Shown piece by piece: positions 15,070 through 40,700 of a DNA stretch of 64,000 nt. The DNA lies in NCBI GenBank assembly GCA_946965045.2, contig OX337240.1:620001-684000 (forward strand), read 5' to 3'. The stretch comes from Epithemia pelagica. Its lineage: Eukaryota; Protista; Bacillariophyta. The notes under the pieces are model-generated. The model was not told the DNA's origin, did not search any database, and was given only the letters and a program-made list of their open reading frames with translations. Position numbers and translations under genes: made by a program. How positions within the stretch are numbered: the first letter of the stretch is position 1; each line of letters opens with the position of its first letter.

Positions 15070-15468
15070 ATCCCAAACCACTTTCTCGTCCATGAAAACT
15101 TGCTCGCGAACGCACTGGGACAATGTCGCTCGTACTGTTATCTTCATACTAGCTAGTCCGGGATCCCAAAAAATTCGATACCGACAAACGATAAACAATT
15201 ATGAAAGAGTGAGTACAATAATAGTCTAGAGTACTCAGTGAAAAAGTGAAAGTGGGCACAAAAAATAATAATCTCTTTAGAGACGACCCGCCAGCACACG
15301 ACAACACAACAAGGATATCTTGTTTGTGTTTTGCGTCTTGTGATTCCTTTCAGTGTTGTTGGTATCTCTTTCTCTCTTGATCCTCCATGGACCAACCCAT
15401 TTCGGCGCACCACCACAGTATGAATATTAGCACCATGGAATCGGTGAACATGGCACCACCACCAGTCA
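15070..15468 (+). repeat. Duplicated promoter plus first 27 codons of the gene at 20846
   Basis: Closely similar to 20530-20927 through ATGGACCAACCC...CCACCAGTCA, then diverges abruptly. Confidence 0.95.
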
Positions 15469-20278: not shown

Positions 20279-20845
20279 GGTCTTCGTCGTTGGTGGGTGT
20301 CAACAGAGATGGATTGGAGAGTGATGGCTGCGGATGACGGATACTTGAACGCACCTACCTTGGTCATTGGTGCATCTTGCAGTTTGGGGTCCTGCGATCC
20401 ATTCCATTTTTCGGTCGCACAAACATCCCCAAAGTTGAGTCCCCTAATCCCACAATTTCTTGCAATGGCCCCTCGTTTCTCGTTTACGGCGCACGCGTCG
20501 TCCTACGTTGGGAGGGACTTTCTACGCGCATCCCAAACCACTTTCTCGTATATGAAAACTTGGTCGCGAACGCACTGGGACAATGTCGCTCGTACTGTTT
20601 GCATCATACTAGCTAGTCCGGGATCCCAAAAAAATTCGATACCGACAAACGATAAACGATTGTGTGATAGTGAGTAGTGAGTACATTAATAGTCTAGAGT
20701 ACTCAGTGAAAAAGTGAAAGTGGGCACAAAAAATAATAATCTCTTTAGAGACGACCCGCCGGCACACGACAACACAAGAAGGATATCTTGTTTGTGTCTT
20801 GCGTCTTGTGATTCCTTTCACTATCTCTTTCTCTCTTGATCCTCC

Positions 20846-22018
20846 ATGGACCAACCCATTTCGGCGCACCACCACAGTATGAATATTAGCACCATGGAAT
20901 CGGTGAACATGGCACCACCACCAGTCACGGACGCAGCAACCCCCACGTTTCCCTCTACCGCCTCTGATGCAGCCACGTATTATGGGTATCAAGAAGGCGT
21001 GGAAGGCTCGTCCATTGTGCATACGGGAGACACACCCAGTGTCGAACTGCCCTTTGGTGCCACAGTTAGCAACAGCAGCAGCAACAGTTTGAGTAGTCAT
21101 GCCATGACGGCCACCACGACCAGTACGACAACCTTTTTCATGACAGGCAGTAGCAGTAGTGGCAGCAGCTTTGGGGGTGGTGGCGGCGGTGTTCCTGGAT
21201 CACCCTTGCCGGCAGATCGCTTGGCTCGCAAACAACGGAATTTTCCACGACGAGGAGGCTTTTGTCATTCGGCCCTGCTCAAATCCGCCGTCATGGCCTG
21301 CATGTCCGAAGGCGATGCGACCAATCGCAACAACAATGGTGGTAGCAGTATCACGGCCAGTCCCGATACCAGTGCCGGTGGAGGAGGAGACTTGACGGCG
21401 GCCGATTTGTTGCAGTTGCAAATTCCCAGCAACAGTTTGAGTTCCTCCCCTCGCAAACGCATGCGACGATCCGATGGCGCCACGGTGATTCATCCTTCGG
21501 GAACTCCCCATGGAGGTGCATCAGCGGGAGGTGGAGGAGGATCCGAATTGTCCACAACGACCTCTACTGGTTCCTTGTGTACGACTCCTACCAAACCCAC
21601 CACCACCGCCGCCACCACGACGGCCAATATGATGATGACCACATCCTCGTCTCGAACGTCTCCGGCACCCTTGGTTGATGACGATGCCGTGATTGCCCGC
21701 GCAACGGATTTGTTGCAACGCTTGTGTGTCAAACCCTTGGATCATTCTGATGGAAGCAGTCGTCACTCGCGACGAACCATGAGTGGCAGTCGACATGGTG
21801 GAAGCAGCAGCACTAGCATTCACAACATGATGTTAATGAGCGGCACTGGCAGCAACAGCACGGGCAGTCCGAGCAACCACACTACTAACAATAATGGCCG
21901 AGATGCCGATTTTGAACGCAAGGCACCGGTCCGAAGAGTATCGCGAAGAACCTCGTATACCAGTCAAATATCCACGGGAACCGATTACGATGATTTGGAC
22001 GATGACGAATTTCATTAA
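20846..22018 (+). CDS. Ser/Thr/Gly-rich low-complexity hypothetical protein (390 aa)
   Basis: Long ORF divergent from the hydrolase gene; no recognisable domain. Confidence 0.7.
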   Translation: MDQPISAHHHSMNISTMESVNMAPPPVTDAATPTFPSTASDAATYYGYQEGVEGSSIVHTGDTPSVELPFGATVSNSSSNSLSSHAMTATTTSTTTFFMTGSSSSGSSFGGGGGGVPGSPLPADRLARKQRNFPRRGGFCHSALLKSAVMACMSEGDATNRNNNGGSSITASPDTSAGGGGDLTAADLLQLQIPSNSLSSSPRKRMRRSDGATVIHPSGTPHGGASAGGGGGSELSTTTSTGSLCTTPTKPTTTAATTTANMMMTTSSSRTSPAPLVDDDAVIARATDLLQRLCVKPLDHSDGSSRHSRRTMSGSRHGGSSSTSIHNMMLMSGTGSNSTGSPSNHTTNNNGRDADFERKAPVRRVSRRTSYTSQISTGTDYDDLDDDEFH

Positions 22019-22149: not shown

Positions 22150-23581
22150 AAAGAGGAGGAGGCTCGAATCTGTGGTGACCACCGCCATTTGCAACCACCA
22201 ATTAGTTCCACCTTGTTGAACTACAAAACATGCTTGGTACACATTCATCATTGCTGCGACGCTCCATGTCTTGCCAAAGGAACCTCTACTTTTTGCATGC
22301 ACCTCGTTTTGTTGGATCCACCGCACTATAACGGGTTTGGGGAATATTGTGAATCTATCATCATCATCATCAACTTTCGATTATTTTTGCTTACATAAAA
22401 ATTCGTTCCTGAAACTTGTGAGGTGTAGGATTTTGTGAGAGCGTTTGAGGTTTTGTATGTGTCCAGAGTTTTGATTTGAAAGTTTGGATTGTATGTGCCC
22501 ACATGATTCTGATTGAAAGTTTGGATTGTATGTGGGCCACAAAAGAAGGCCTTACTATCCCATCGCACGCTACAGGTTTTCTGCTTGCTGTATTTTGTGA
22601 AAATCAAGAGTCCACCAGTTCAGGACGAACGATGATACAATGATGTGTCGATTTGGCGGAAAATGTATCCTGTAGATTGACACGATGCTTTACAATTTAC
22701 ACTGCGTGTTTTATCTTTTTTTGCGTCTTCTCGTTGGATCTAGAATTTATCTCTCACATTTCTCCATTGCCTTTCTCTAAATCACTTCTCCCTCTCTCGC
22801 TAGCTCTAGTGTGGCACTACGAGAGACTAAAGGTAGCCGTTATATCCCTATCCCTAAGCTCGTAACGAATTGATTCTTCGGACGACTTGGGACACGGCAC
22901 GTACACGGACACGGCCCATGCGCAACAGCGACTGCAATTGTGCACGATGACTACAAGCTGAGTTCAGACAGAATGTTCCTGACGTAGCGCTCCAGTAGGA
23001 AATCTACGTAATCCGCGCGAGCCATCCCCTTAATATAGCCCTTCTATTTATGCCTCTACCGTTCTACCAAAAATTGACCATGGTGAACGGTCCTTTTGAC
23101 CGATCTCTTGCCAAATAGGAGACGGCTCCATGATCCCATGCTCTGAACCTCTTCTCCATTCATGGGTTGAGCATGGAGAACGATGTCGGCGCTGCATTCG
23201 TTTTGTAGGTGTCGTTTTATCTAGTTGAAGGTGGTCGCCGCGCGATTTACTACGGCGACTCACGGCAAAACTTGGTGCAACCAATGCACCTCTATTGTAG
23301 AATCGAATGATAGAAGATAGAACAAAGACTATGAACACTTGTAGCGTTGTTCACGTCAAAAATTGATATTCTTCTCGTTAGATATATGGAACTTAGACTA
23401 GAAGTTGCGTCGTTCACAACAAAGATTGATGTTCTTTTCTTTGTTGTGACTCACACAGCCGTACCTGAACGCAATGTATTGTACGGTAAACGTAACACAA
23501 CTATAGAATTAGATCGTATTCATAGAGAATGAAGATCCTACTCAAATGATAATCATAAAACGCTGCTACATTGTTCACTAT

Positions 23582-24154
23582 CTAGGCTTGTTGATGATTA
23601 AAGAAGAGATTTTGAAGCGGGTGCTTGAGCATCATCGCACCAAGCGAAATGTTGAAGCGATCCATATCCTTGCTGCCCATGTAGATTGTAACGACCTGGG
23701 GTTCCATGCAGGCTTTAGGGTTGATGGAGCAGCGTGTGTAGAGGCGGATGCGTCCCATGGGAGGTCCGTTCTTGCTCGTCTTTCCAGAGACCTGGTCCAG
23801 GTGCGACAGAGCAATGAACCCAACTGGAACAACCAACGCTGGTTCCTCATGCTCGCTTGTTGCATCCCGGTCAAAGACTGCAATCCGTAGGTAGTCGGTC
23901 GCAAGCTCCCGCTGCACAAGCAGATGGCCACGGTCGACGATGTTGTGGCCAGTGTCCTTGTTTCTCGACATGGGCCCGATGAGCGCGCAAACATCGCTGG
24001 CATAAAAGCACGACTTGAACGGGAGACCAGCACCACCCTCACGGCCATCCTCTTCGTTGAACTCGAACTTCGTCCTCATGTTGGTCATCTTGTTTCTTCT
24101 TCCTTGCCTCTTCCTGTCGTCTCTGTTTGATTGTTCCATTGCACGGCGGGTCAT
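23582..24154 (-). CDS. Cargo ORF-A, hypothetical protein (190 aa), copy 1
   Basis: ORF with globular-looking composition, conserved in copy 2 (49994-50566) and divergent from ORF-B. Confidence 0.6.
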   Translation of the reverse strand: MTRRAMEQSNRDDRKRQGRRNKMTNMRTKFEFNEEDGREGGAGLPFKSCFYASDVCALIGPMSRNKDTGHNIVDRGHLLVQRELATDYLRIAVFDRDATSEHEEPALVVPVGFIALSHLDQVSGKTSKNGPPMGRIRLYTRCSINPKACMEPQVVTIYMGSKDMDRFNISLGAMMLKHPLQNLFFNHQQA

Positions 24155-24325
24155 TCGGAAGTTGCTTCATGCTGCAAGTTGATTTTGTGGCGCGCGCCGA
24201 TATTGTTCACGAATGAGCGCGGGGGGATTCCCTAGATGACACAAGAACGGAGAGCGGGCAACAATCAAACAAACAAACACAACAATCAAACGAACGAATC
24301 CCTATTGTGTTCTCACTTTCCAACG

Positions 24326-25232
24326 ATGCGCCAGACGCGTAGTGCTACCAAACGAGCTGAGTCTGCGAAGAAGGAGCAGGAGGACTCCGCCGCAGCTCCC
24401 TCCACAACCGCATTTCCCTCCGACAAGGGAAACAAGGGAAACAAGGCAAACAAGAAAATGAAGACAAAGACGGCCGTGGACAACAAAACGTCGAAGAAGA
24501 AGAAGACGACGACGACGAAGTCTCCCGCTTCGACAAAGAAGCATGTGACCTTCAACCTTGAGGGTCCTTCGTCGTGGCACGAGCGCGCAAAACAGTGGCA
24601 ACTCACCATTGGGGATGAAGATGGTATCCCAGTGTTCTTCGTCAGCAACAAGGACGTCAAATGCGCTAACCTGTCGGATATCGCGGCAGAGCTCCTTGCG
24701 ATCGAGGCTGTCGGCAAAGAAGGTAAGTTTGATTGTTCATTGTTGGTTTTGAGTCTCCCTTTCTCACGACGCGCCCTCTGCTGCCACAGACACCAAACCC
24801 AACAGCAAGCCCAACAACAAGCCCGACAGCAAGCCCGAGAAGGAGATCAAGAAGGAGGACGACGTCGAGAACAAGACTCCAGAGTCTTATGTGACCCCGA
24901 AGAAAGTAACTTCTTCCCCGAAGGTGGCGTCTCGAGCTTTCGCACTGACCCCCTCCCAGAAGCATGCTTTCCAGCGTCGGATTGCTGAGGAACAGGTGAA
25001 GGAAAGTGGAGCGACAGACCCTCGCCAGACTTTGAATGAGTCGCTGGCATTGGGAGAAAACATCCCGTCGTCTCCTCCTTTGTTCTTTAGCAATCCTTCC
25101 CGTGCATACCGGACATCCATTGATTCGTATGCCGATGATGGATTTCTCGAGACCCAAGAAGACTTCATCGGTACGCAGCAAAACGGGCTTTTTGGTCCCG
25201 ATTACTTGGATCATGAGGACGAGGCGTACTAG
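24326..25232 (+). CDS. Cargo ORF-B, hypothetical protein; join(24326..24722,24790..25232), 279 aa, copy 1
   Basis: Intron GTAAGT...CCACAG (24723-24789, 67 nt) joins MRQTRSATK...GKE to DTKPNSKP...DEAY* in frame. Confidence 0.72.
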
Positions 25233-25740
25233 ATATCTACTGATGGACGTTTTAGGTATCCTTAATCACTAAATATGAATTGATTTGTCATCATGGTAGT
25301 GCTTCTACAGTCGTTCTTGTTGTGATTATCATCATTGTCGTCGTCCAAGTCCTCGTCATTGTCGTGGCTATCATTGTCGTCGTTGTATTGTAGTCGTCCT
25401 TGTTGTAGCTATCATCGCTCATCCCGTTTGTCCTCTTCATCATCATCGTCATCGTCGTTATCCAGCTTGCCAGTGTCGGTAGTTGGGTCCCGGTTTGCGG
25501 GCACGCCTCGTATGGATGTACGAGGGAGTTTGTGATTGGTCCCAGACGAGCTATGATTCTTATCTCATATTTTGCGTTTTCGACACAACACGACAATGTA
25601 CTAAAGTATAATATGAAGGAATAAACTAGTAAATCTTAATGTCATACTGCAACTCAACGTACCATGGTATTCTTTTTCAACAATAACACACTTTCACCAC
25701 GAGGAAAGATCTAAGTTTGATCGGCTTCTTTGCTCGCGAT

Positions 25741-28647
25741 CTAAATACCAGGTTTTTTTGTAGCCAGAAGCACTCTACAATAATCACCCTGGACGGCAAC
25801 GCGATGGCCATCGAGCGTAAGGTTAACCCGAATGATCCCACTTGGGCGATCACCAGGAATGTCCTTTTGATGGAAGTAGCACTCTGAAAGCCTTTGTCCA
25901 GAAGGTAGATTGTAGCTGTTCTTTGGCATGGGATCGTGGATGGTCCCATCTTTTCCTTGGTACACGTAAAAATGTGCACGTGGATTTCCCAGCTCTCCAG
26001 TCTTAAAGCCACCAGCATGGACAGTATCTCCTCGAACGAGGAGAAACTTGCCGTACGGGATTTGTACCACGTTACCCAACTCATGCGTATAGTTCTCGTG
26101 CTTCTCAGCACGGTAGCTCCACAATTCAATGGACATACCCTCCTCCGTCAGGGGCATAAAAACAATGAAGGGGATGCGTTCCCGGAGTGGCAGATCTGAG
26201 AACGATCGCCGAGTCATCCTTTTGCTTTTTTGTTGCTTCCCGGATGGCGTTTTTGGACTCTCGGACATGTTTCCTGTTACGGCCGGGAACAAGAAGTCGA
26301 TGTGAGGTTCTTGCACTTCTTCCCGAGTGGATTTCATAAGCGAAAGGTGAATGCTCATTTGGTCTGCAAATGATTCATCTTTTGCGTACTTCATTCCATG
26401 GAGAGCTGAGGCAAGAAACTGCTTGAAATCTGTCGTGACTTTTTGGACATGTTCTGGGTCGCAGTCGTTGAAGTACCGAGTGTTGGCCACCATGCCCTCA
26501 TGTTCCATCATCGCCATCAACAAATTTGGGGTGTAGTCTTGAACAGATTTGAAAAAGGTGCCCTTTCCTTTACTGTTCAGGTGTTTGCCTTTCCACACTT
26601 GCTCCAGCAACTGGAGGAGGTCTGGCGGCGTTGTAAAAAAACAGCCTCGATAGATTTTGTTTTCACTATCGTATAGCGATTTGAAATACTTCTTGCGCAA
26701 TTCTCTATTTTGCAACATCTGTTGCTTTTGCCATTCACCCTCCTGCATTAACTCGTCGATCGCATTCATCTCTGGAGCAAAAGAATTGTCATCCGACATC
26801 TCCTGATCAAAAGAATTGTCATCCGTGGTGTCACTTTCTGAAAATTCTGGCAAGGCAATTACTCGTACTAACATTCCAGAAAGGGAGCGATTGGGTCGAG
26901 TGGCGGGTTGAGCTTGTGCTGCAGGTGGGACGGGATTGCTCGGACGCTCCGGTGAACCTACGACCGGCTGGGTCGTGCGTTGTTGTTGCTGCGATAAAGG
27001 CAGAGCCCCCTGGTAACCTCCTCCATAATGGGGTTGATTATAGGACGGGGGATGCCCATGGTAATGCGGCTGAGGATGATGCGGCGGCGGAGGATGATGC
27101 GGCGGAGGATGATACGAAGGAGGATGATGATGATACGAAGGAGGATGATGATGATGATGCGGCGGAGGATGATACGAAGGAGGATGATGACGATGCGGTG
27201 GATCATAATATGGCGGAGGATGATGACGATGCGGTGGATCATAATATGGCGGAGGATGAGGATGATGCGGTGGATCATAATACGGCGGAGGATGAGGATG
27301 ATACGGCGGAGGATGATGTGGTGGCAGCTGAGGGGGCGAATTGTAGTGCCCAGAAACGTCTTGCGGAGGAGGCGGAGAAGGAAGAGCAGGAGGACGAGCA
27401 ACAGCAGCAACTGGGCGGAAAACAGTAGTAGAAGAGGTAGCAAAAGCCTTCTTTGTTTTTTTCCCGTCGTCTTCATTTTCATCACTGGGTCGACCGCGTT
27501 TCTTTCCCTCGTCTTCGTCGTCGTCACCTTTCGTCGACGGTCGGATAACCTGTTCGGAGGACGTTGGCGATTCGTCCGAAAGGTTATAAAACAAAGACAG
27601 CTCGTCGCCCTTTTCGATCGGCTTGATTGCCTTGACTAGAAGATTCGGCATGATTCTCACGTTGTAATGATCATCCGATTCATCCGGTGGATTGTCTGTA
27701 CCGTACCGATGGTGTAGGTGGTCGTTGATTAAGTGCAGCCCCATGCCGAAGTGATCGTCGTTGTCTGCTTGAAGCCTTCGATTGTCACGTCCGAACTGAA
27801 TCGCGTACTCGTTGGGTACAACTGTCCGAGACGTGACGTCGTTTCCCGTGTACGCACCAATCACTTCACCATCTTTGATTGTCCGAACTGCAAAAACGCC
27901 AAACCCGGCGCCTGGGAGTTTTGACTCCTTCACCTCAAACAGAAGCACTTTTCCAAGGTAGATCTTGACTACCGGATTGTTCGCAAATGTGTAACCGACA
28001 TGCTTGCCGATCGGGAAGGTATGTTTTCTGTTCTTCTTGACAGGGAGACCCATTCCACTCGAAAGTGGCACAATCTTCCCCTTTTGCAAGCCAGAACCGG
28101 GCTTCCGAATTGGAGCTTCTTGGACCGAAAAAGTGGCCGAAATCTTCCGTGAGACATACTCTCCCATAGCACAGGCAAGTACAGCACTGTCTTTGATCTT
28201 GGAGAGCGTCTTGAGGCCTTCGGTGAAAGTCCTGATTGGATCCCGTCCAGAACGAGAAGGGAGTTTCTCCACTTCCTCGATGCCTTTCTTGTAGTCCGCT
28301 GTGCGCGTATCGATGAGGAGCTGCCGCATTTGAGTTTCCGAATACTGTTTGCTGTGGTCCTTCTCTGGATGGCCACGCCGAACATCTGCAAGCTTTTTAT
28401 CCTTCACTTCGGCAAAGTCTTGATCCGAAAGAAACCGATGGTGCTTTGTTGTTGTCGCTTCGTCTGTTGCTGCTGCTTCGGGTGCTGCGGCTGCTGCTGC
28501 TTCGGGCGCCGCTGCTGCTTTGGCTGACTGCTCTTCCGCTGCATCTATTGCAAGTATAAGAGCGTCAAGATTTCCTTTGTCACTCATGCTGTCTCGTTTT
28601 TGAGCGCCTGCTTTTGAATACTGTTTCTTAGGGCTTGGTTTCCCCAT
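25741..28647 (-). CDS. Cargo ORF-C: SET domain, Pro/His/Tyr-rich linker and 2OG-Fe(II) dioxygenase-like domain (968 aa), copy 1
   Basis: SET: ESKLPGAGFGVFA..I.DGEVIGAYTG, LINDH, AIKPIEKGDELSLFY. Double-stranded beta-helix (DSBH) oxygenase: QEPHIDF (HxD), RGDTVHAGG (distal His), NPRAHFY (Arg). Confidence 0.87.
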   Translation of the reverse strand: MGKPSPKKQYSKAGAQKRDSMSDKGNLDALILAIDAAEEQSAKAAAAPEAAAAAAPEAAATDEATTTKHHRFLSDQDFAEVKDKKLADVRRGHPEKDHSKQYSETQMRQLLIDTRTADYKKGIEEVEKLPSRSGRDPIRTFTEGLKTLSKIKDSAVLACAMGEYVSRKISATFSVQEAPIRKPGSGLQKGKIVPLSSGMGLPVKKNRKHTFPIGKHVGYTFANNPVVKIYLGKVLLFEVKESKLPGAGFGVFAVRTIKDGEVIGAYTGNDVTSRTVVPNEYAIQFGRDNRRLQADNDDHFGMGLHLINDHLHHRYGTDNPPDESDDHYNVRIMPNLLVKAIKPIEKGDELSLFYNLSDESPTSSEQVIRPSTKGDDDEDEGKKRGRPSDENEDDGKKTKKAFATSSTTVFRPVAAVARPPALPSPPPPQDVSGHYNSPPQLPPHHPPPYHPHPPPYYDPPHHPHPPPYYDPPHRHHPPPYYDPPHRHHPPSYHPPPHHHHHPPSYHHHPPSYHPPPHHPPPPHHPQPHYHGHPPSYNQPHYGGGYQGALPLSQQQQRTTQPVVGSPERPSNPVPPAAQAQPATRPNRSLSGMLVRVIALPEFSESDTTDDNSFDQEMSDDNSFAPEMNAIDELMQEGEWQKQQMLQNRELRKKYFKSLYDSENKIYRGCFFTTPPDLLQLLEQVWKGKHLNSKGKGTFFKSVQDYTPNLLMAMMEHEGMVANTRYFNDCDPEHVQKVTTDFKQFLASALHGMKYAKDESFADQMSIHLSLMKSTREEVQEPHIDFLFPAVTGNMSESPKTPSGKQQKSKRMTRRSFSDLPLRERIPFIVFMPLTEEGMSIELWSYRAEKHENYTHELGNVVQIPYGKFLLVRGDTVHAGGFKTGELGNPRAHFYVYQGKDGTIHDPMPKNSYNLPSGQRLSECYFHQKDIPGDRPSGIIRVNLTLDGHRVAVQGDYCRVLLATKKPGI

Positions 28648-29059
28648 GGTCGAAACGCAAAAACTCGAAACACGAAACACAAGAAACACGAAACGCAGCA
28701 TTCTCCTCAGCCCTCAGCTCACATTCCAAAAAAAAAATCTTGAGCTCACATACTAAAAAACGGTGAAGTTTTGGTATGTGGGCTGAGTTACTTAAGGATT
28801 TGCGTGCCAGTTTTGCGATGCGTGCGCGTTTTCGGAGAGGGAGGCGTGTTTCGCGCGAGGTCTGCTCCGAAAATCGTCCATTTTCTCGCTCTCTCACATT
28901 TTCGAGGTACTTACAAACTGATAATCCAACACGCAACACGAGCACGCAACACGGAAGTGATCATTGATACCAATAACTGACAAGAAATACATTCAATAAA
29001 ATGGATTGCTGTTATAAATAGTTAAGTTACATGCATTTTGATGATAAATGGAGATTAGA

Positions 29060-32000
29060 TCAGGTTTCTACTGCACCAGATCCTTGCGTTTCTCTCCAGA
29101 GACGTGAGATGAAGCCATGATCTTGGTCGAAGGCGGATCGGTGACACTTGATTGCTTTTGACATCTTTTCAATTTCGGCATACGAGAGGCCCGCAGCTGC
29201 ATAGTCTCTGTTGTTGGAATTTTGATCGTATAACAAGTACGCGAGCATATAGCGACGTGCCTTTGCTGACATTTTCCGCATGATTTCGGGTGTTGTTTTC
29301 TTCAGGCTCGCTGTCAAACATCGTAAAAAGGCAGCTTTGTCTTTCTTCTCATTCAGTGAGAAAGCACAAAAGACTTTTTTTGAGTAACCCCAGCCATACT
29401 CGATCCCCTCACCGGCCATTTCACAGTGATACTTGGTCGATACGAGAATCTCGATCCTGCAACGATGTCGTTCAGACAAGTCTTCCGCCAGCTTCTCCAT
29501 TGCAGATTTTTTGTTCTTGAAATCGGAGCATTTGCTCATCAGATGAACCATAGAGTACTTTTTGTAGTCCGCCTGATAGGCTTCTTTCACAGTCTTCTTA
29601 TCCGCTTCCAACCATGCATCTCTGGTTGTCTTGACGTACTTGATCATGTTGTTAGGGTCTATCCACCCCCGCTCCCATAACACTTGAAAGAGCCCTTTTG
29701 CAGCATTCATCCAGCCTTCCTCGATCACATCATCTTCAATCACCGTTGCAATGTTGGAGCGTTTACAAAGGTCCTGTAGTTCACCAGCATTTTTCGATTG
29801 AAATGAACGTTGCATTCCAGGTCCCATGACCCGGACAAGTTTTGCCATGAGCTCCTTCTTTGTGAGGTTGCGCTTTTTCTTTCTACCAGTTCGGTGTGTA
29901 TTCTTCGATGCGACACGCTGCGCGTCATTGAGACGATGGCCTTTTTTAGCAACTGGACCACGATCGTTCTCCTGATAGACGAGGTGTTGTACGTCACCAA
30001 CTCGTAGTTTGTCGTCATGGTTGTACGGGCCAAGGCAAGCTTGATCAATAATTTGTGTGTCCCGCATGCTGGGAACAGCTCCTCCCCAGTCGTTATTCAT
30101 GTTCAGAGCATTTAACCCATCGGATTGTTGTTTTCCATGACCACTGCTTTGGTCGAACAAAAAGACAAAGTCATGGGCAGGGAACATGACCACGAGGCAA
30201 TCGACAATATCCTCCAACTGCAAGGCCATGTATTCATAATTCCAATATCCCTCTTTATCTGCTCCGTATTCAAAAAAGCGAGTGAACGGTTGGGCATTGG
30301 TAATTGGAGTCTTGGCAGTGTGACCATTGAGGTTCACTGCAGCCTCGGTAGAGACGTATTTGTTGTGTGTCGCATGTAGACGGAGTTCATTAATCCGAAA
30401 TAGACTCGCAGCAAGCAACGGGTTTCCGTTCATAAGGAAGCCCCATGATCGGCTTACAAAAGCGCTGATCATCATCCCATGTCCATCATCCTTTGGCAGC
30501 ATTTTAGTTGCGCCATCTTTAGTGTACCATGCCTTAGACGAGAAGGAAAACTGCTTGTAGATCGATTCGTCCTGGCCGATGAGGATGACAGGTTTGCGGT
30601 CGGAGGGAAACCTGTGTGACAAGTTTCCATTGTGAATTGTGTTTTCTGGTTTGATGTACCGTTCAAATTCGCTTGGGAAGGCATCAACATGGTACTCCCG
30701 CATCTGCTTGCCTGTTGTTACATCAGTGTACTCAAATACAAAGCTGTTTGGCAAGAGCTTCTCCTTGCCCGCATTCCCTTCGTTTTCAAGTTTGATTGCA
30801 TCCTCGGTAGGGAGCTGCACCCACCGATACGACAGCTCTTCCCACTTAAAGTACTTCTTGACAAAAGCAGCTCTGTGGGCAACATTCTCAGCATTTTCGT
30901 GTCGATCAGTGAAGTATTTTTTCGTGTGTTCCTTGAACACGAACCCTGCAGCAGCAATACATCGCCACGCTGTGCTTTGCGAAATGGTGGAAAGCTTCAT
31001 CGATGCCAAGAAGGCCTCGTACGATACTGGCGTTGCATTCGTATCCATGCACTCTTGTACGATCATGGTATGCATATCCGGAAGCAATGTTGTCCTCAGG
31101 TACATTAGAGCAGACTCTGTTGTAAGAGTGCTCAGGTTTTCCTTTGCCCAGCATTCAAACTTTACCTTTGCTTCAGGTATGTGAACGAATAAGACGGGCG
31201 ATGGCTCTTTCCCAATATGAACGTGGTAGTTGGGATGAGGGAAACTGTCGTTTTCCCGAAAGTACCTGTGAAAACGAGCAATGGTCTTGGGATGTTTTTT
31301 TACTTTTTCACCATAAATCTGTTCCATTTTGCTAATGGCTTCGCTTATGCAGTTCAGCCATGTACGACCGTGTGGCATATCAAGCAACGCTATCTTATAA
31401 GAAAGTTGTAAATACGTTGCCTTGAGCAGTACCCTCTGTTGCTGTTCCTGGTTGAGGGGGAAGATGTCTCCCTTGTTAACCACATTCGGAAGTGCCTCCA
31501 CGTTGGAAATGGCCCTTTCAAGGGTTTCTATCCATCGCTCAAGATTTCGTTTTGACAATCCTGGAGAATCGCATTTGCCGGCAAAGAGCCTACGGTTCCT
31601 TGGCTCATCAAAACAGGCGCTTTCCATTTGTTGCGATAGACCTTGGATCATCTCACTCTCGAAAACTGAAAAACCAATCGGCAAACTCTGTGGATGGTCA
31701 TGGCCGATTTCGTCTGTGGCCAATTCAGGATGTTGGATTGCTCCAACAAGCACCTGATTTGTGTTGTCGTGAGGTGGTGACGTTTGCATTTCGGTAGGGC
31801 TGTCTCCAATTTGTGGCGGTTGACCATGTTGCTGCGTTGCAGTGCTCTTGATTGCTGGTGGAGTTGAAGTGTTTCTTGCTTGCTTGGATGTATTTAGCGT
31901 GCCTTCACGCAACCCTGGTGACTCTTCGTTCCTTCGCTTCGTTGGCTTCGCTCGTCCCGACCGCCGAATCGTGTTTGTTTCTGCAGCCTCCAGCCATTCT

Positions 32001-32404
32001 TGGTGATCGTCGAATATCACTGGCCGTGTTGTTGTGTCGGAGCTTACATAAAAGAATGTGTATCTTTTATTGTGGATTGTGACTTTGTGGCGGTACCAGC
32101 CAAACTTGTTTGATTCCGACACCTTAGTTTCGAAACAGAGTTTAAGAACAACATCTTTAGTCAAAACAAGATTCAGTCTGAATGTCGACAGTCCTGGCAG
32201 CCAAGTGTGCATGAAGTTCACAATCTGGGTGTCTTGGATCCACTTGTTGCAGAACCCAAACGAGGATGGGGAGCATTGCGTCTTAAAGACGTCAAGAATC
32301 TCTTGTGCCGATAAACTTCGTTCCATCCGAGACTGTGTTGCGTGGGATGAGTCGGATGATCGCGTCATTGAGTATGATGCCAACCCCGTACCTTGTAGCG
32401 CCAT
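29060..32404 (-). CDS. DDE transposase, IS630/Tc1/mariner-like with a very long D-E spacer (1114 aa), copy 1, intact
   Basis: LIGQDESIY (D1), FLFDQSSGH (D2), KYHCEMAGEGIEYGWG (E). About 250 residues between D2 and E by manual count. The ATG position is conserved in copy 2 (33462). Confidence 0.87.
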   Translation of the reverse strand: MALQGTGLASYSMTRSSDSSHATQSRMERSLSAQEILDVFKTQCSPSSFGFCNKWIQDTQIVNFMHTWLPGLSTFRLNLVLTKDVVLKLCFETKVSESNKFGWYRHKVTIHNKRYTFFYVSSDTTTRPVIFDDHQEWLEAAETNTIRRSGRAKPTKRRNEESPGLREGTLNTSKQARNTSTPPAIKSTATQQHGQPPQIGDSPTEMQTSPPHDNTNQVLVGAIQHPELATDEIGHDHPQSLPIGFSVFESEMIQGLSQQMESACFDEPRNRRLFAGKCDSPGLSKRNLERWIETLERAISNVEALPNVVNKGDIFPLNQEQQQRVLLKATYLQLSYKIALLDMPHGRTWLNCISEAISKMEQIYGEKVKKHPKTIARFHRYFRENDSFPHPNYHVHIGKEPSPVLFVHIPEAKVKFECWAKENLSTLTTESALMYLRTTLLPDMHTMIVQECMDTNATPVSYEAFLASMKLSTISQSTAWRCIAAAGFVFKEHTKKYFTDRHENAENVAHRAAFVKKYFKWEELSYRWVQLPTEDAIKLENEGNAGKEKLLPNSFVFEYTDVTTGKQMREYHVDAFPSEFERYIKPENTIHNGNLSHRFPSDRKPVILIGQDESIYKQFSFSSKAWYTKDGATKMLPKDDGHGMMISAFVSRSWGFLMNGNPLLAASLFRINELRLHATHNKYVSTEAAVNLNGHTAKTPITNAQPFTRFFEYGADKEGYWNYEYMALQLEDIVDCLVVMFPAHDFVFLFDQSSGHGKQQSDGLNALNMNNDWGGAVPSMRDTQIIDQACLGPYNHDDKLRVGDVQHLVYQENDRGPVAKKGHRLNDAQRVASKNTHRTGRKKKRNLTKKELMAKLVRVMGPGMQRSFQSKNAGELQDLCKRSNIATVIEDDVIEEGWMNAAKGLFQVLWERGWIDPNNMIKYVKTTRDAWLEADKKTVKEAYQADYKKYSMVHLMSKCSDFKNKKSAMEKLAEDLSERHRCRIEILVSTKYHCEMAGEGIEYGWGYSKKVFCAFSLNEKKDKAAFLRCLTASLKKTTPEIMRKMSAKARRYMLAYLLYDQNSNNRDYAAAGLSYAEIEKMSKAIKCHRSAFDQDHGFISRLWRETQGSGAVET

Positions 32405-35400
32405 TGAGGGTGGTTCAAGTAAACCCAAAAGCATCCGGATGCAGCTCAGCTACAAGGTAGGCGGTTGGGATGGCCCTCCACCATGGTCGTTAGACAACAA
32501 CCGTTTTTTCATCATTTTCGACGGAATTCTAGCGTTCGGAAGCTGTCACACATCACGGTACGAATAAAAAAATTTATTATTCAGACACTGGGTTGTCACG
32601 AGTCGGACACTTTCATTCACTAGTCAGGCCAAACGCTATTGAGGATTATATTTTATGGTACTAAATCTACGAGGGGTCTACGTCAGGAACATACTCCCTG
32701 AACTCAGCTTGTACGTACAATGACAAGAAGTTGTGTGAAAAGGACAGACAATACAAGAAGAGAATGATGAAGGTGTGGCAAGGGTTCCAGTCATGTATTG
32801 ACAAATGTCACAATTCTGACCCAGAGTCCTTTTTCATTGGGCCACACACTGGTTCGTTCAAGCAAAATGGGCAGTGCACGTGCAAGAAGTAGCTAGCAAT
32901 AACTAGGTAGTTCATATTCTATATAGAGTTTCATACTGTGTGCAATAGGAGCATCTTGCTTGCAGTCGTGCCATGTGAATGCTGCATAGTGTATACTCTA
33001 TGAAGTCTTGTGGAATTGTGGGGTCGAGGATGTGACGTATGTCTACATCACAGGAGTGGCGGGCGCGGGATTCACTTGCATGCTCTACTATGGCCCGCAT
33101 TACTCTCTATCAAAGAGTACGAAAAATTGACCAAAATCGACCCTCGACAGAATACAAGCTGAGTTCAGGGAGTATGTTCCTGACGTAGACCCCTCGTAGA
33201 TTTAGTACCATAGAGTATAATCCTTAATAGCGTTTGGCCTTACTAGTGAATGAAAGTGTCCGACTCGCGACTTCCCAGAGTCTTAGGATATATTTTTATG
33301 TGTTTTACTGTGTTGCGTGACAGCTTCCGAACGCTGGAATTCCGTCCAAAATGATGAAAAAACGGTTGTTGTCTAACGACCATGGTGGAGGGCCTCCCAG
33401 ACCCGTTGAACTGTTGCCGAGCTGCATCCGGATGCTTTAGGGTTTACTTGAACCACCCCCAATGGGGCAACAGTTCAACGCATCGACATCATCCACAATG
33501 ACACGATCATCGGACTCACCTCACGCAGCACAGTCTCTGATGGAACGAAGTTTTTCTGGGAACAAGATTGTTGAACTGTTTCGGAAGCAGTGCTCACCCA
33601 CCGTGTTTGGATTCTGCAACAAGTGGTTCCGAGATGTCGAGCTTGTAGGATATATGAACACTTGGTTGCCAGGATTGTCTGTGCTGGAAATGAACCGTGC
33701 TTTCCGAAGAGAAAAAAGCATTGCGATGTGTTTCGATGATGTTGAAAAGCCAAACAAGTATGGCTTCTACCGCTACAGAGATACGATCAAAAGGGAACGC
33801 TTCACATTCTATTACATCTCTAAAGACACAACAACCCTGCCAGTGATGTTGGACGATCATCAAGAATGGCTGGAGGCTGCAGAAACGAACACGATTCGGC
33901 GGTCGGGACGAGCGAAGCCAACGAAGCGAAGGAACGAAGAGTCACCAGGGTTGCGTGAAGGCACGCTAAATACATCCAAGCAAGCAAGAAACACTTCAAC
34001 TCCACCAGCAATCAAGAGCACTGCAACGCAGCAACATGGTCAACCGCCACAAATTGGAGACAGCCCTACCGAAATGCAAACGTCACCACCTCACGACAAC
34101 ACAAATCAGGTGCTTGTTGGAGCAATCCAACATCCTGAATTGGCCACAGACGAAATCGGCCATGACCATCCACAGAGTTTGCCGATTGGTTTTTCAGTTT
34201 TCGAGAGTGAGATGATCCAAGGTCTATCGCAACAAATGGAAAGCGCCTGTTTTGATGAGCCAAGGAACCGTAGGCTCTTTGCCGGCAAATGCGATTCTCC
34301 AGGATTGTCAAAACGAAATCTTGAGCGATGGATAGAAACCCTTGAAAGGGCCATTTCCAACGTGGAGGCACTTCCGAATGTGGTTAACAAGGGAGACATC
34401 TTCCCCCTCAACCAGGAACAGCAACAGAGGGTACTGCTCAAGGCAACGTATTTACAACTTTCTTATAAGATAGCGTTGCTTGATATGCCACACGGTCGTA
34501 CATGGCTGAACTGCATAAGCGAAGCCATTAGCAAAATGGAACAGATTTATGGTGAAAAAGTAAAAAAACATCCCAAGACCATTGCTCGTTTTCACAGGTA
34601 CTTTCGGGAAAACGACAGTTTCCCTCATCCCAACTACCACGTTCATATTGGGAAAGAGCCATCGCCCGTCTTATTCGTTCACATACCTGAAGCAAAGGTA
34701 AAGTTTGAATGCTGGGCAAAGGAAAACCTGAGCACTCTTACAACAGAGTCTGCTCTAATGTACCTGAGGACAACATTGCTTCCGGATATGCATACCATGA
34801 TCGTACAAGAGTGCATGGATACGAATGCAACGCCAGTATCGTACGAGGCCTTCTTGGCATCGATGAAGCTTTCCACCATTTCGCAAAGCACAGCGTGGCG
34901 ATGTATGCTGCTGCAGGGTTCGTGTTCAAGGAACACACGAAAACATACTTCACTGATCGACACGAAAATGCTGAGAATGTTGCCCACAGAGCTGCTTTTG
35001 TCAAGAAGTACTTTAAGTGGGAAGAGCTGTCGTATCGGTGGGTGCAGCTCCCTACCGAGGATGCAATCAAACTTGAAAACGAAGGGAATGCGGGCAAGGA
35101 GAAGCTCTTGCCAAACAGCTTTGTATTTGAGTACACTGATGTAACAACAGGCAAGCAGATGCGGGAGTACCATGTTGATGCCTTCCCAAGCGAATTTGAA
35201 CGGTACATCAAACCAGAAAACACAATTCACAATGGAAACTTGTCACACAGGTTTCCCTCCGACCGCAAACCTGTCATCCTCATCGGCCAGGACGAATCGA
35301 TCTACAAGCAGTTTTCCTTCTCGTCTAAGGCATGGTACACTAAAGATGGCGCAACTAAAATGCTGCCAAAGGATGATGGACATGGGATGATGATCAGCGC

Positions 35401-35830
35401 TTTTGTAAGCCGATCATGGGGCTTCCTTATGAACGGAAACCCGTTGCTTGCTGCGAGTCTATTTCGGATTAATGAACTCCGTCTACATGCGACACACAAC
35501 AAATACGTCTCTACCGAGGCTGCAGTGAACCTCAATGGTCACACTGCCAAGACTCCAATTACCAATGCCCAACCGTTCACTCGCTTTTTTGAATACGGAG
35601 CAGATAAAGAGGGATATTGGAATTATGAATACATGGCCTTGCAGTTGGAGGATATTGTCGATTGCCTCGTGGTCATGTTCCCCGCCCATGACTTTGTCTT
35701 TTTGTTCGACCAAAGCAGTGGTCATGGAAAACAACAATCCGATGGGTTAAATGCTCTGAACATGAATAACGACTGGGGAGGAGCTGTTCCCAGCATGCGG
35801 GACACACAAATTATTGATCAAGCTTGCCTT

Positions 35831-36588
35831 TGTTAGGATTCTCACCGAAAACTAGGTGGCGAAACCTACAACTCATCGAATGATGCTAGTATTTTATGGC
35901 ATCCAATGACATTTTCCTAAAAGTGAGAAAAGAATGTCGGCATGCTCGCGAAACTATAAATTTGGCCACGGCATGCTCGCAGTGCACGCGTTATCGGCGA
36001 CCGCTCGGATATTAACTATGGCCCAACACGTGCGCGCCCAAAACTATCAAGTGCGCGCCTCTACTATCCGAGTACGCGCATCCACGATTCGACCTAACGG
36101 TCTATGTAATCAAAGCACGAATCACGATCACGCGAGACCATATCTCTGTTCCCACAAATCCAAGAATGCAAACAGCAACGCGCCCAGGACAAGACTTATA
36201 CCACGACAAAGCAAGAGCTGTTGCATCCCATACATGTTATCCATCACCCTATACATCCAATATACACCAATGCCGGTCTACTCCAACCAGTGAGGACCTA
36301 TCACACCAGATCCATGGCCGTATGCAAGAGCCAGGACTTCGGCACCGTCAACCACCTTAGTTAGTAATCGTCTCACAATCATTAATATCACCATTTTAAC
36401 ACTCATCTTAAGACTAACCTCTTATCAGTGGACCGACTGCCCCCACCCACGGCGGACTTCGACTTGCAACTCTTCTCTGACCCGTGGAGGATTGTTGTAT
36501 CGGTTGGTGATTCGATTGTCGGCTCAGCGAGCCTTTTACCTATCCTAACTATCTGTCTAACCCCTGTTGAATCGAGAGAAGTTTATCA
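35831..36588 (+). repeat. 5' LTR
   Basis: TGTTAGGATT...GTTTATCA. Two mismatches to the 3' LTR were seen (near 35905 and 35912). Confidence 0.97.
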
Positions 36589-36602
36589 GATTAACAGTCT
36601 CA
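36589..36602 (+). other. Putative primer-binding site complementary to the anticodon arm of tRNA-Asn(GUU)
   Basis: GATTAACAGTCTCA abuts the LTR; its reverse complement TGAGA-CTGTTAA-TC reads as stem, GTT loop, stem. Confidence 0.65.
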
Positions 36603-36626
36603 TCGTTTATTTCCGAGAAGCTTTCG

Positions 36627-37382
36627 ATGTCTCACGACGATTCCAACCTCTCTATTCGACACATCTTTCATTCCTTCCAACAAAGCGGGGAGGAACTCCA
36701 TCCACCCGTGGCCCATCCGGGCGAGCCCTTGATTGAAACTCCGAAACCGACCCCGACTCAGGCCAGTGCTCCGAATCCCTTCCAGACCCCGGACCAAGTG
36801 GTCCAGCCTCCTTCGATCCCGACCCAACCTTCGACTCCGCCTCGCCGTTTGAACCCTACTCGCACCCGACGTACGAGCCGTCTTCTTACTGCGCATATCC
36901 GACACTTCCGCGAGCCGACTGAGTCGACTACCGACCCCGACGTGATCCGTTCCACAACCGAACGCGAGATCGATTTTCAGTCCGTCCAACCCGTGACTGA
37001 CCTTGAGGACATCCAACGACTTCTCGACCTCTTGAACCAGTGCTCGAGACGCCGTTTCATTGTCCAAGCCCTGTTGGGCAACCCTGTGGAACCCATCCGT
37101 ATTCGATTCATCTCCTTTGAACGTCCAACCAACTACTTCCACACCATCTGGATCGTCAACTCGACGACGAATCCGCTACCTACCCCGACTACTCGTCTCG
37201 ACGAGTACGTCTCCTTTGTTCACGAGATCCATCTCTGCCAGGATTTCCGTGCGACTATCTACCCTCTCTTCACTCAACACGTGAACCACTTGTTGGAAGA
37301 CGACGACGTTGAAGAACTAGCCACTACAGTGACCGATTCCGCATCTCGTCTTCAGTACCGAGCCGAAAGTGACCAAGAATAA
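36627..37382 (+). CDS. Extra ORF upstream of gag-pol in the Copia element (251 aa)
   Basis: ATG at 36627, just after the PBS. Pro/Thr-rich N-half and globular-looking C-half; no recognised domain. Confidence 0.65.
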   Translation: MSHDDSNLSIRHIFHSFQQSGEELHPPVAHPGEPLIETPKPTPTQASAPNPFQTPDQVVQPPSIPTQPSTPPRRLNPTRTRRTSRLLTAHIRHFREPTESTTDPDVIRSTTEREIDFQSVQPVTDLEDIQRLLDLLNQCSRRRFIVQALLGNPVEPIRIRFISFERPTNYFHTIWIVNSTTNPLPTPTTRLDEYVSFVHEIHLCQDFRATIYPLFTQHVNHLLEDDDVEELATTVTDSASRLQYRAESDQE

Positions 37383-37716
37383 GTAACTTTACGTAGTTTC
37401 TACACCAAACCAGACACAAGACCGAGTTCCGTCCAAGACTTAAACTCAACGCACATCCGGGTACCCTTGGTCGCACAACACGCCACACATTCCCGTCAAA
37501 TCGCGAAAATTCGGCGAAAATTTGTTGAAACTCGGCGAAAATTTGTCGGAATCAACGGAAATTTCCAGGAGTCGCACATCACAACACACATCCGGGTATC
37601 ACATACGTGGTACATACGTGGCACACGTGGTACATCCGGGTTCACATCACATCACACATTAAATAAACCACATCACACCGCACATTAAATAAACATCGAA
37701 CCAACCAAATAACATC

Positions 37717-40700
37717 ATGGAAGCGACACCTCCCAAGACACCGTTTACTCCTCCTGAGGACAAGTCAAGTCATATAACCGACCAAGATCTCTTCGACCAT
37801 ATAACTAAAGGCATCTTTGGTTGTAATGATGAACGAGCCCAATCACTTCAAAAGTGGATGCGACATCATGGTTTTGAACATATCCTTCATGTCCTCGACC
37901 ATGTTGCAACTGATCCCGAGGAGACACTCAAGGATCTCATGCAATACAAGGTTGGAAAGCAAGTCAACGACCTACAGACAAGTACAAGATTACAACTCAA
38001 ACTAATGGCATATTGGTTACTACAACAACGGCAACTCCAACATGGAAAACTACCCCGTGCTACATGGATGAACCTCACGAGGGACCAATATGACGATTGG
38101 AGGATCAACACCGACTTTACCAAGTCTGGTATGAACCAAGACCCAGTTTCTCCTCTGAAATCACCTGCACACTCCGTATCATCCCGATCTCCCACTACAT
38201 CCTCTACAACATCTCAATCCATGTTAGATCTCTCTGCTTTCAAGAAAGGAACCAAAAGAGATGCAACAGCATTTGAATCATTCAAAGACGAACGATACTT
38301 TGATTCGTTTTGGCGTGTATTCAAATCAACTGCGAAAGCACAAGGATTGTCGAATGTTCTTGATTTCAATTACAAGGTACCCAAGGATGACGAATGCGCA
38401 GAGTTACTTTTCCGAGAACAACAAGTCTTTGTATATTCTGTACTTGTACGTATTATCCAAACCGACCAAGGAAGAGCATACGTTCGAGAACATGAACATG
38501 ATGAAGATGCAAGAGCCGTCTTGAAGAAACTCCATGTTCTACACACTGAATCTGATCTAGCTAAGCGAGAAGTGTTACGCCTAACAAGCTACATTTCGAA
38601 TCTTCGACTGGATGACTCTTGGCGTGGTACAACTCGTCAGTTTCTCCTACATTTCCAAGAACAGCTACGACTCCTGGATAACCTTGTACCACTGTCGGAT
38701 CGTATCCATGACCATACAAGGATGACCTTCCTTATGCAAGCTGTTGAAAAAGTACCTGATTTAAGACGAGTCAAGATCTTGGATAACGTTGTCAACACAA
38801 AATCTGGAGCCAAGTCTCTCTGTTATCAATCATATTTCCGCCTGCTTCTTGATGCTGCTTTTGATCATGACCAAGCTACCCGAACTTCTGCGTCTAACCG
38901 TCGTCGTCATGTAAAGCAACATGAATTTCAGTTGGATGAACCTTTTGAACCAGTGGAGCCCCCTGACTACCAGATCAACAACACGAATATCCAATCCGAA
39001 AAGTTCCCAACTTCGTCGAAAATCAGCCTTCCAAGAGATGTATGGTTTAAACTCTCTGAAGAGGATCGGCAAATCATTGTCGACTTCAATAAATCCGTCC
39101 AAGATTCCCCGACAACTCCACGCAAGGTCCAAACACATTCTCTTGACATTGATCCTGAACCGGACCCTGATCCTGATGCCAACAACGTTGGTGATACCCA
39201 CCAAGATGCACCAGAACAAGATCCATTCGATACATCCTCTGATCCGGTTACCCAGTTCGTACACCAGGCTATTGCATCGACAGATATCAATCATCCAGCA
39301 TCTGATCTCAGCAACATCTTGTCAACTTCTACGACAAAGTCAAGTCCTAAAGTCAAGTTCAAGTCTTCTGCCGATCACAAGCAAAAGGTTCATATGTCAC
39401 GGTATCTATTCTCCCGCAAATCCACCTTTTCTGGTAATCAACTCATCGATCGAGGTGCCAATGGAGGCCTTGCAGGATCTGACATGCGCATCCTTGCCAA
39501 AACCGGACGTCATATTACCATCGTAGGTATTGACAATCATGAATTGACTGGCCTTCCAGTTGTTACCTGTGCTGCCAAGTTTGATACAAGTGATGGACCC
39601 ATTATTGGTATCTTCAATGAGTATGCCCACTATGGAAAGGGTTTATCTATCCATGCCCCAGCGCAATTTGAACATTTCGGCCTATCTGTCGACGAACGAT
39701 CCGTCAAGGTTGATGGCAAACAACGCATTACTACCCTTGATGGACGTGCATTGCCCTTACGAATCAAGGATGGCCTTGCATACATTCAATCTCTGGGAAT
39801 CCCTTCTGATGACGATATGGATAAATATCCGCATATTGTGTTCACTTCACCCCATATCTGGGATCCTTCTGTACTTGACCATACCCATCCAGACCCCCAT
39901 CAAGACCCTGCACCGAACTGGACATCTGTGGAGACTGATGGTAGTATGGAAACGTACCCCTATGACCAATATGGGGAGTATACCGATCGCGTTGTATGCA
40001 CTTTGAATCTCCTCCTTGATCTCCCATATGATCATGGCCCCGATACACCTTCCTTCTTTTCCATCTATGCTGATCAAGATGGCAACGACCCCACACTTCA
40101 TGCGTCTGTCCACAAGCTCTACAAGGAACAATACGACTGGAAGAAATTTCGCCCTTTCTTTGGGTGGCAATCGGAAGATGTAATCGCAGATACGTTCAAG
40201 CATACAACTCGTCATGGACACATTTCCTTTGACCAGGATACCTTGAAGAAACATTTTAAGGCCCGGAATCCTATCCTTAACCTACCACGACGGCATGAAC
40301 CCGTTGCCACTGACTCCATCTTCTCCGACACCCCGGCTGTTAACCATGGTGGCAAGATTGCTCAGATTTTTGTTGGTCGTGATACTTTGGTTACTGACAT
40401 TTATGGTATCAAATCTACCAAGCAATTCGTCAATACCCTCCAGGATAACATTCGTACACGTGGTGTCATGGAGACTTTGATCAGTGATGGTGGTTCGTCA
40501 CTTATTTCCCACAAGGTCAAGGATATTCTTCGCACCCTTCTGATTGGTGAATACCGTTCCGAGCCCTATCATCAACACCAGAACAAAGCTGAGAACCGCT
40601 ACCAGACCGTTAAGCGTATGACCAACGCTATCATGAATGCCTCTGGTTGCCCTGCTTCTGCATGGTTACTTTGTTTAGAATATGTGTGTGACCTCCTCAA

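Follow-up and report, generated by a model that had tools for sequence, protein, structure and literature searches.

Why does a diatom DNA transposon carry a gene that joins a SET domain to a second, oxygenase-like domain, and does this gene serve the element or simply travel with it? The question is raised by a 64,000-nucleotide stretch of the Epithemia pelagica genome (contig OX337240.1 of assembly GCA_946965045.2, positions 620,001 to 684,000 of the forward strand; the whole stretch is called the window below, and its positions are counted from its first letter), in which two copies of a large element with terminal inverted repeats (TIRs) each hold one long open reading frame (ORF) of this kind (Table 1). 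The explanation that we consider probable is that the ORF encodes a fusion of a SET domain with an oxygenase captured from the host, that the fusion gene is carried as cargo by the transposon, and that its product is a bifunctional protein modifier serving the element.

The limits of the element are given by its ends. A 30-bp terminal sequence was found four times in the window (the ends of the left copy correspond to it with 0 and 3 mismatches) against a chance expectation of 0, and these four sites bound two elements whose ends all abut a TA dinucleotide. The left and right copies face each other and are separated by 439 bp. Read in the element's own orientation, the order is TIR, transposase gene (1124 amino acids, aa), SET-oxygenase gene, an ORF of 250 aa on the opposite strand, and TIR. 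Besides the left and right copies of the window, designated WL and WR, two more full copies were found on other contigs of the same assembly, L001 (5987–15709) and L002 (4073–13809), with TIRs and TA as in the window copies but with different flanks, and in all four the cargo gene lies between the TIRs at different insertion sites. Moreover, the unitig k-mer depth in two DNA runs of the organism climbed from about 117–133 in the flank to about 3000–3500 inside the element, and the jump falls exactly at the TIR of the left copy (22934–22956). The depth in the element is about 25 times that of the flank, which suggests, as a rough estimate, about 25 copies. An origin of the two arms by simple palindromic duplication of a segment was considered and rejected, since each of them is bounded by a TIR pair of its own with TA flanks and the element is present at other loci with different flanks. 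TA flanks were also seen on the related elements L011 and L012 (see below) and on a related miniature inverted-repeat transposable element (MITE), and the TIR core is common across families. Taken together, these results identify the element as a DNA transposon of the diatom that has TIRs, targets TA and is active or was so until recently.

The cargo gene is represented in the window by two alleles, A in the left copy and B in the right copy. Allele A starts 358–412 bp downstream of the 1124-aa transposase ORF and is co-oriented with it. A preliminary description of the locus, made from the letters alone, had placed an ORF that is intact in both copies within the TIRs, co-oriented with the transposase and about 410 bp downstream of it; this agrees with the distance that we measured, with the TA-flanked TIRs and with the two open alleles. 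The N-terminal halves of the alleles are about 97–99% identical and the oxygenase halves about 69% identical in protein.

In the N-terminal half, the Pfam SET model matched both alleles above its cutoff, and in allele A the match extends over profile positions 1–105 of 105 with an E-value of 9.2e-7 and 29.7 bits (cutoff 22.4). The GxG motif of the S-adenosylmethionine pocket and an ELxF/Y-Y motif with the catalytic Tyr define SET domains, and allele A contains GAGFG at residue 264, LIND at 324 and ELSLFY at 367–372. At the position of the Asn-His pair the sequence reads LINDH, the Asn being kept and followed by Asp and then His; PR-type domains deviate here too. As the preliminary description had stated, the domain is compact: residues 200–440 are devoid of cysteine, and there are thus no pre- or post-SET zinc clusters. 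With regard to relatives, the sequence neighbours in the PDB were the PR domains of MECOM, PRDM16 and PRDM12 (weak matches), and the nearest named clusters by language-model features were small PR/SET proteins of giant viruses and haptophytes. As judged from its sequence, the domain is a minimal PR/SET-type domain and a predicted lysine methyltransferase.

The SET domain is joined to the oxygenase by a disordered Pro/His/Tyr-rich linker, its composition also being as described previously, which stays in frame despite many indels between the alleles. In the linkers of both alleles (26782–27381 and 46800–47300) we counted 10–11 PPxY motifs, though the repeat units differ. PPxY is the consensus ligand of WW domains, and these motifs may be either a compositional by-product or a recruitment module.

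For the C-terminal domain, no Pfam match was obtained in the last ~390 residues of the ORF, and phmmer found no match to it among PDB sequences. An exhaustive HMMER scan of 1.8 billion representative proteins returned 222 relatives, 58 of which had E ≤ 1e-10. In an alignment of 100 sequences the invariant or near-invariant columns were Q198, H201, D203, H296, G298, G299, R309, H311 and Y313 in domain numbering, corresponding to Q797, H800, D802, H895, G897, G898, R908, H910 and Y912 of the ORF; no sequence deviates at H800 or H895, and D802 and R908 are conserved in at least 90% of the sequences. The HxD...H...R oxygenase pattern that had been read from the single locus is therefore a property of the family, and the earlier observation that the metal ligands persist between the diverged C-terminal halves also holds, as the metal and 2-oxoglutarate (2OG) ligands are identical in alleles A and B. 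None of the Pfam oxygenase models, PhyH (PF05721), P4H, JmjC, TET and AlkB included, matched any of the 100 family members at E ≤ 5.

AlphaFold gave no usable model of the C-terminal domain from the single sequence (predicted local distance difference test, pLDDT, 33.7), and a model built by AlphaFold2 with the 100-sequence alignment (A1) was used instead (pLDDT 79.7; predicted template modelling score 0.78). Foldseek gave 218 matches to the PDB at E ≤ 0.001, which were 2OG oxygenases throughout among the matches listed, with AndA, FtmOx1, TraH and AsqJ on top at E about 1e-6. The top PDB and AFDB matches were all 2OG oxygenases (E 1e-6 to 1e-14), the two best AFDB clusters being a 'Fe2OG dioxygenase domain-containing protein' and an unnamed entry, and the Swiss-Prot, AFDB-cluster and Atlas structure searches agree with this fold. 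VIA-align Z-scores were 12.7 for AndA, 12.4 for AsqJ, 12.2 for FtmOx1 and 11.6–11.7 for prolyl hydroxylases, over about 190–200 residues, and the family profile aligned its vHAGG...PR motif, marginally (E 0.05), to the distal His and the Arg of FtmOx1. Like AndA, AsqJ, FtmOx1 and the prolyl hydroxylases PHD2 and P4H, the domain combines this fold with a Gln three residues before the first His, an HxD...H motif and an Arg 13 residues after the distal His; in AsqJ the Gln and the Arg bind 2OG. It differs from them in having only 8–15% identity and no Pfam PhyH or P4H match, and the model shows additional helices at the N-terminus, an insert of 40 residues and a hairpin at the C-terminus. Since the cofactor residues are complete and the structure matches are consistent, the 2OG/Fe(II) fold and the set of cofactor-binding residues can be regarded as established on the model, and by shape only the sub-family appears to be PhyH-like or P4H-like. 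Of the placements that the preliminary description had put forward (PhyH, TET/JBP, JmjC or AlkB), the general assignment to 2OG oxygenases thus stood, with PhyH-type enzymes nearest and prolyl hydroxylases next, whereas JmjC, TET/JBP and AlkB structures were absent from the best 50 PDB and best 30 AFDB matches listed.

The ESM-Atlas clusters lying nearest to the two domains, in features or in shape, consisted of small Nucleocytoviricota proteins, in a PR/SET cluster for the SET domain and in a PhyH cluster for the oxygenase. This nearness is too weak as an argument for a giant-virus origin.

The four full copies also show how the gene has varied. They are 98–100% identical outside two sharply bounded cassettes, namely the first ~750 bp, including the N-terminus of the transposase, and the linker together with the oxygenase half. 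Both cassettes are present in two versions with 67–88% identity, and all four combinations occur, indicating recombination or gene conversion between element lineages. Synonymous divergence (dS) and the ratio of nonsynonymous to synonymous divergence (dN/dS) were estimated for the diverged alleles, including that of a related family, L010. Comparison of A with B over 299 codons of the oxygenase gave dS 0.33 and dN/dS 0.44 (Fisher p 3e-5), and the values for the beta-helix core were 0.30 and 0.38; the oxygenases of A and L010 gave dS 0.34 and dN/dS 0.47 (Fisher p 7e-5). For the N-terminal/SET half, dS was 0.12 and dN/dS 0.64 between WL and L010 (Fisher p 0.08), and between WL and WR dN/dS was 0.94 on very few changes. 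The diverged 5' cassette of the transposase was saturated (dS 2.8), and its dN/dS was not used. Judging from these codon comparisons, purifying selection of moderate strength appears to have acted on the fusion in no fewer than three diverged alleles (A, B and L010), and the selection that the preliminary description had suspected is seen in the range of 0.38–0.47 across the diverged oxygenase alleles.

The history of the cargo can be read from related elements and proteins. A Fragilaria element of the same transposase family (L012) is 3.5 kb long and contains the transposase only, without any cargo. Element L009, whose transposase is 94–99% identical to ours, has a SET gene (404 aa) followed by other ORFs. 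The L011 family of the present genome, with a transposase that is 38% identical by tblastn over the whole protein and 46% by BLASTP over the catalytic region, has no oxygenase; its cargo is a SET gene with 29.5% identity to ours, along with an opposite-strand ORF of 248 aa. The L010 family (transposase 55% identical) carries SET (85%), oxygenase (72%) and the 250-aa gene (37.5%). Since elements without cargo (L012), with SET only (L009, L011) and with SET plus oxygenase coexist, cargo seems to have been gained stepwise; the simplest history is that SET was acquired first by the elements and that a host oxygenase was captured later and fused to it. A relic on another contig of the assembly (L003, 9227–10660) has a SET-like segment (50% identical) 370 bp upstream of an oxygenase segment (37%), with no transposase within 10 kb, and it is the decayed remnant of an old element or else a vestige of the fusion from before its capture.

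The nearest oxygenase relatives outside the elements, P0005 and P0007, are stand-alone proteins of about 440–460 aa with 31–38% identity, and on independent metagenome contigs their genes have TPR and WD40 genes as common neighbours. Stand-alone genes in conserved synteny are taken to be ordinary host genes, and the sequence relationships thus indicate that the oxygenase was captured from a family of stand-alone host genes of ~460 aa. Members of the oxygenase family were also found in the MMETSP transcriptomes of marine eukaryotes, and some others are fused to Med26/TFIIS-type and CTNNBL domains. No SET domain was found in the other oxygenase-family proteins retrieved, the longer ones included, and the SET-oxygenase fusion was found solely on transposons or as a relic. 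It should be underlined that word-indexed homology searches with the whole ORF or with its N-terminal half were swamped by low-complexity words and returned copies from the same genome alone. The preliminary description would have been contradicted by homologs that are ordinary host genes unlinked to transposases; the nearest oxygenase relatives are indeed such genes, but the fusion itself is not.

The transposase belongs to a family of ~1000-aa proteins that is abundant in diatom genomes and metagenomes; we retrieved 116 relatives, among others from Fragilaria crotonensis, Thalassiosira and Attheya, all of them annotated as hypothetical. Diatom names were also seen on Atlas clusters, and the window is eukaryotic. 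Its invariant acidic residues are D622 (in GQDES), D761 (FDQSS; FDxS.GH in the family) and E1005/E1012 (CE.AGEGIEY.W; here GEGIEYGW), and these are candidates for a catalytic D/D/E triad in which the spacing from the second D (D761) to the E is ~244 residues. In the DDE/D transposases of Tc1/mariner this spacing is about 34–41 residues, and up to ~80 in variants. No match was obtained to Pfam DDE models, nor between the family profile and the PDB. The IS630 NCBIfam model (E 0.0046) and HTH_33 each matched 2 of 40 family members weakly, and language-model features and the predicted shape of one relative pointed, as a lead only, to DDE_3 clusters. The best reading is a very enlarged relative of IS630/Tc1/mariner, because the weak profile signals agree with each other, the TA duplication is universal and the TIR core is shared across families. 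The name Tc1/mariner-like, used in the preliminary description, is thus backed by TA duplications, TIRs, a conserved D/D/E and weak IS630/DDE_3 signals, but it lacks a significant profile match.

Under the explanation that we prefer, a SET-oxygenase cargo serving the element, the protein would be a two-headed protein-modifying enzyme, with a SET head that methylates lysine and an oxygenase head that acts on the same nuclear or chromatin substrate, where it hydroxylates a residue or oxidises it in another way. The benefit to the element would most likely be interference with heterochromatic silencing of its copies, or a conditioning of chromatin for excision or integration. A nuclear role would be favoured by the SET partner, by the Med26/TFIIS-like and CTNNBL fusions of family members and by published precedents (see below). 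Several observations weigh against this explanation. The 'NH' motif of the SET domain is N-D rather than N-H, as in some weakly active PR domains, and the nearest oxygenase structures act on small molecules, so that a chromatin substrate is conjectural. The superfamily placement of the transposase comes without a statistically significant profile match, and its D-to-E spacing is far from canonical. In the homology searches made, the fusion was found in one assembly only. Values of dN/dS of 0.4–0.5 represent only moderate constraint, and the SET half compared with L010 was weaker still (0.64, p 0.08). In L002 an in-frame stop interrupts the gene where the linker begins and a frameshift follows close to the C-terminus, indicating that single copies decay, as expected for a transposon, and the SET-oxygenase copy of L010 is now frameshifted. 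Finally, transcript evidence was sought and none was found; the sequence was contained in DNA runs only (X1–X3), which are recognisable as DNA from contigs of hundreds of kb or from even cover of intergenic flank. Low-depth non-canonical joints in X3 were examined as introns and rejected.

An alternative explanation is that the gene is mere passenger cargo, a transduplicated host fragment of no benefit to the element whose ORFs are open only because the copies are young. The copies are so similar over most of their length that an intact ORF is weak evidence, and the disrupted L002 and L010 copies and the dN/dS of 0.94 in the N-terminal half point in the same direction. However, alleles A, B and L010 have reached a dS of ~0.33 and yet show dN/dS of 0.38–0.47 with all ligand residues kept, the reading frame survives the many linker indels, the three-gene layout persists down to 55% transposase identity, and SET is retained in families at 38–46% transposase identity; we consider a passenger role unlikely. 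Unlikely, too, is a functional modifier acting away from chromatin, in which the oxygenase would work on a small molecule or a non-histone protein and SET would methylate the same non-histone target, for instance the transposase or a repair or ubiquitin-pathway factor recruited via the PPxY linker. Its attraction lies in the best structural neighbours, which are small-molecule PhyH-type enzymes and prolyl hydroxylases, and in the 10–11 PPxY motifs of both linker alleles; in addition, the activity of minimal SET and PR domains is often weak or directed at non-histone targets. The substrate does not follow from fold neighbours at Z 12 and ~10–15% identity, however, the PPxY counts may follow from the Pro/Tyr-rich composition, and the fusions within the family, to SET as well as to Med26/TFIIS-like and CTNNBL domains, favour a nuclear role.

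The preliminary description had gone further and suggested a writer-plus-eraser, with the oxygenase acting as a lysine demethylase or as an oxidase of 5-methylcytosine or nucleic acid in the manner of JmjC, TET/JBP and AlkB. The double-stranded beta-helix fold and the HxD...H...R chemistry are common to these enzymes, a host SET+JmjC fusion exists in Phaeodactylum (PMC3145265), and TET/JBP genes are present on fungal transposons (PMC12730594). As stated, this suggestion is not supported by the structure and Pfam searches described above, which yielded none of the three types, either among the top matches listed or among the 100 family members even at E ≤ 5, and we regard it as highly improbable. 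The boldest form of a chromatin role would be that of the first transposon-borne bifunctional histone-modifying enzyme, whose SET domain writes one mark while an unclassified non-JmjC oxygenase removes or hydroxylates another, with anti-silencing over the element's own copies, and whose ~460-aa host relatives in diatoms form a new class of chromatin hydroxylases or demethylases; we think it doubtful that all of this is true.

Several known systems resemble the SET-oxygenase transposon in part. In Phytophthora, transposons of the HarbingerS and MuDR types have been reported to encode a SET histone methyltransferase (Kojima & Jurka 2014, Repbase Reports; cited in PMC12730594). As far as the cited description goes, these are likewise DNA transposons of a stramenopile with a SET gene as a separate ORF beside the transposase, but their transposases are of other superfamilies; the present element is TA-targeting and IS630/Tc1/mariner-like, and it has its SET domain in one protein with a 2OG/Fe(II) oxygenase. 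In fungi, TET/JBP dioxygenases have been captured by DNA transposons (KDZ, Plavaka and others), repeatedly and in a lineage-specific manner (PMC12730594). These transposons too carry a 2OG/Fe(II) dioxygenase within a DNA transposon with a presumed anti-silencing role, whereas the oxygenase here is not TET/JBP but nearest to PhyH-type enzymes and prolyl hydroxylases, is fused to SET and resides in a diatom. The host protein of Phaeodactylum tricornutum mentioned above (gene model bd1647; PMC3145265) has the same domain order, with a diatom SET domain placed first and joined to a cupin-fold 2OG oxygenase domain; it differs in being a host gene with JmjC, the present gene being transposon cargo with no JmjC model match. 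The Arabidopsis VANDAL/Hiun transposons encode the anti-silencing protein VANC (cited in PMC12730594), and the concept of a transposon-encoded factor against silencing of its own family is the same, although VANC is not known to be an enzyme of these folds and an anti-silencing role is only proposed here. SETMAR (Metnase) similarly links a SET domain to a mariner-type transposon, but there a host SET gene is fused to a domesticated transposase; the contrast drawn in the preliminary description is correct, as the SET gene here is a separate ORF within a mobile, multi-copy element.

Given the published SET genes on Harbinger/MuDR and TET/JBP genes on fungal transposons (PMC12730594), the earlier designation of the locus as an undescribed system was too broad. 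Its new features are the joining of SET to an oxygenase, an oxygenase family for which Pfam has no model, and a giant family of TA-targeting diatom transposons in which a stepwise gain of cargo can be followed. Transposons with their own epigenetic enzymes are rare and informative, since they reveal which of the host's silencing marks are important and provide natural means of countering them. The element adds a third combination to SET on oomycete Harbinger/MuDR and TET/JBP on fungal elements, and its stepwise intermediates (no cargo in Fragilaria L012, SET only, SET plus oxygenase) are represented. If the protein does act on chromatin, it would give direct access to the silencing of transposons in diatoms and might represent a new class of protein oxygenases; if it does not, the element would remain a clear case of a DNA transposon in which a gene was captured, domains were fused and cassettes were shuffled.

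Table 1. Coordinates in the window of the transposon copies, their genes and domains, and later insertions.
Feature	Position	Strand	Remarks
Left element copy (WL)	22954-32711	-	~9.76-kb TIR transposon; TA at 22952-22953 and 32712-32713
5' TIR (transposase side)	32682-32711	-	30 bp
3' TIR	22954-22983	+	30 bp; 3 mismatches to 5' TIR
Giant transposase ORF	29060-32434	-	1124 aa
SET-linker-oxygenase ORF, allele A	25741-28701	-	Uninterrupted; 986 aa from first ATG; second in-frame ATG at 28647 (start in the preliminary description)
SET domain (PF00856)	27583-27906	-	Residues 266-373 of allele A
Pro/His/Tyr-rich low-complexity linker	26782-27381	-	About residues 441-640; 11 PPxY motifs
2OG/Fe(II) dioxygenase domain	25858-26778	-	Residues ~642-948; Q797, H800, D802, H895, R908
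Third element gene	24236-24988	+	250 aa; opposite to transposase; Lys/Thr-rich N-terminus
Right element copy (WR), inverted relative to left copy	33155-51802	+	TA-flanked; interrupted by copia-type long terminal repeat (LTR) retrotransposon and 610-bp MITE
SET-linker-oxygenase ORF, allele B	45486-48389	+	Intact; 967 aa
Third element gene, right-copy counterpart	49160-49912	-	ORF
Copia-type LTR retrotransposon in right-copy transposase	35831-44150		1893-aa polyprotein; RVT_2, weak rve match
MITE-like insertion (small non-autonomous TIR element) in right copy	50836-51445		610 bp; perfect 61-bp TIRs, TA duplication

The remaining features of the window concern the third gene and later insertions. 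The 250-aa gene is present in all full copies and, as noted above, in the diverged L010 family, and the 248-aa ORF of L011 is located at the equivalent position; the protein gave no Pfam match. The copia-type retrotransposon in the right copy has LTRs of ~760 bp that are ~99% identical, TG...CA ends and a 5-bp duplication (GCCTT). The 610-bp MITE is missing from the other three full copies. Its TIR core, GGCTGGGT, resembles that of the Fragilaria giant-transposase member (L012), and from this sequence likeness the MITE may be a non-autonomous relative of the giant-transposase family.

Outside the left copy and to its left, three adjacent direct repeats (104–145 bp, 94–100% identical) occur at 15070–15468 and 20530–20927, about 5.46 kb apart, and may represent either the two LTRs of a further element or a duplication of the local sequence. 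To the right of the element, tandem arrays of a 282-bp unit (95–100% identical) are found in two blocks 3.4 kb apart, at 52174–52755 and 55886–57031, with flanking 300-bp duplications at 51975 and 55687, and long ORFs run through the second block on both strands.

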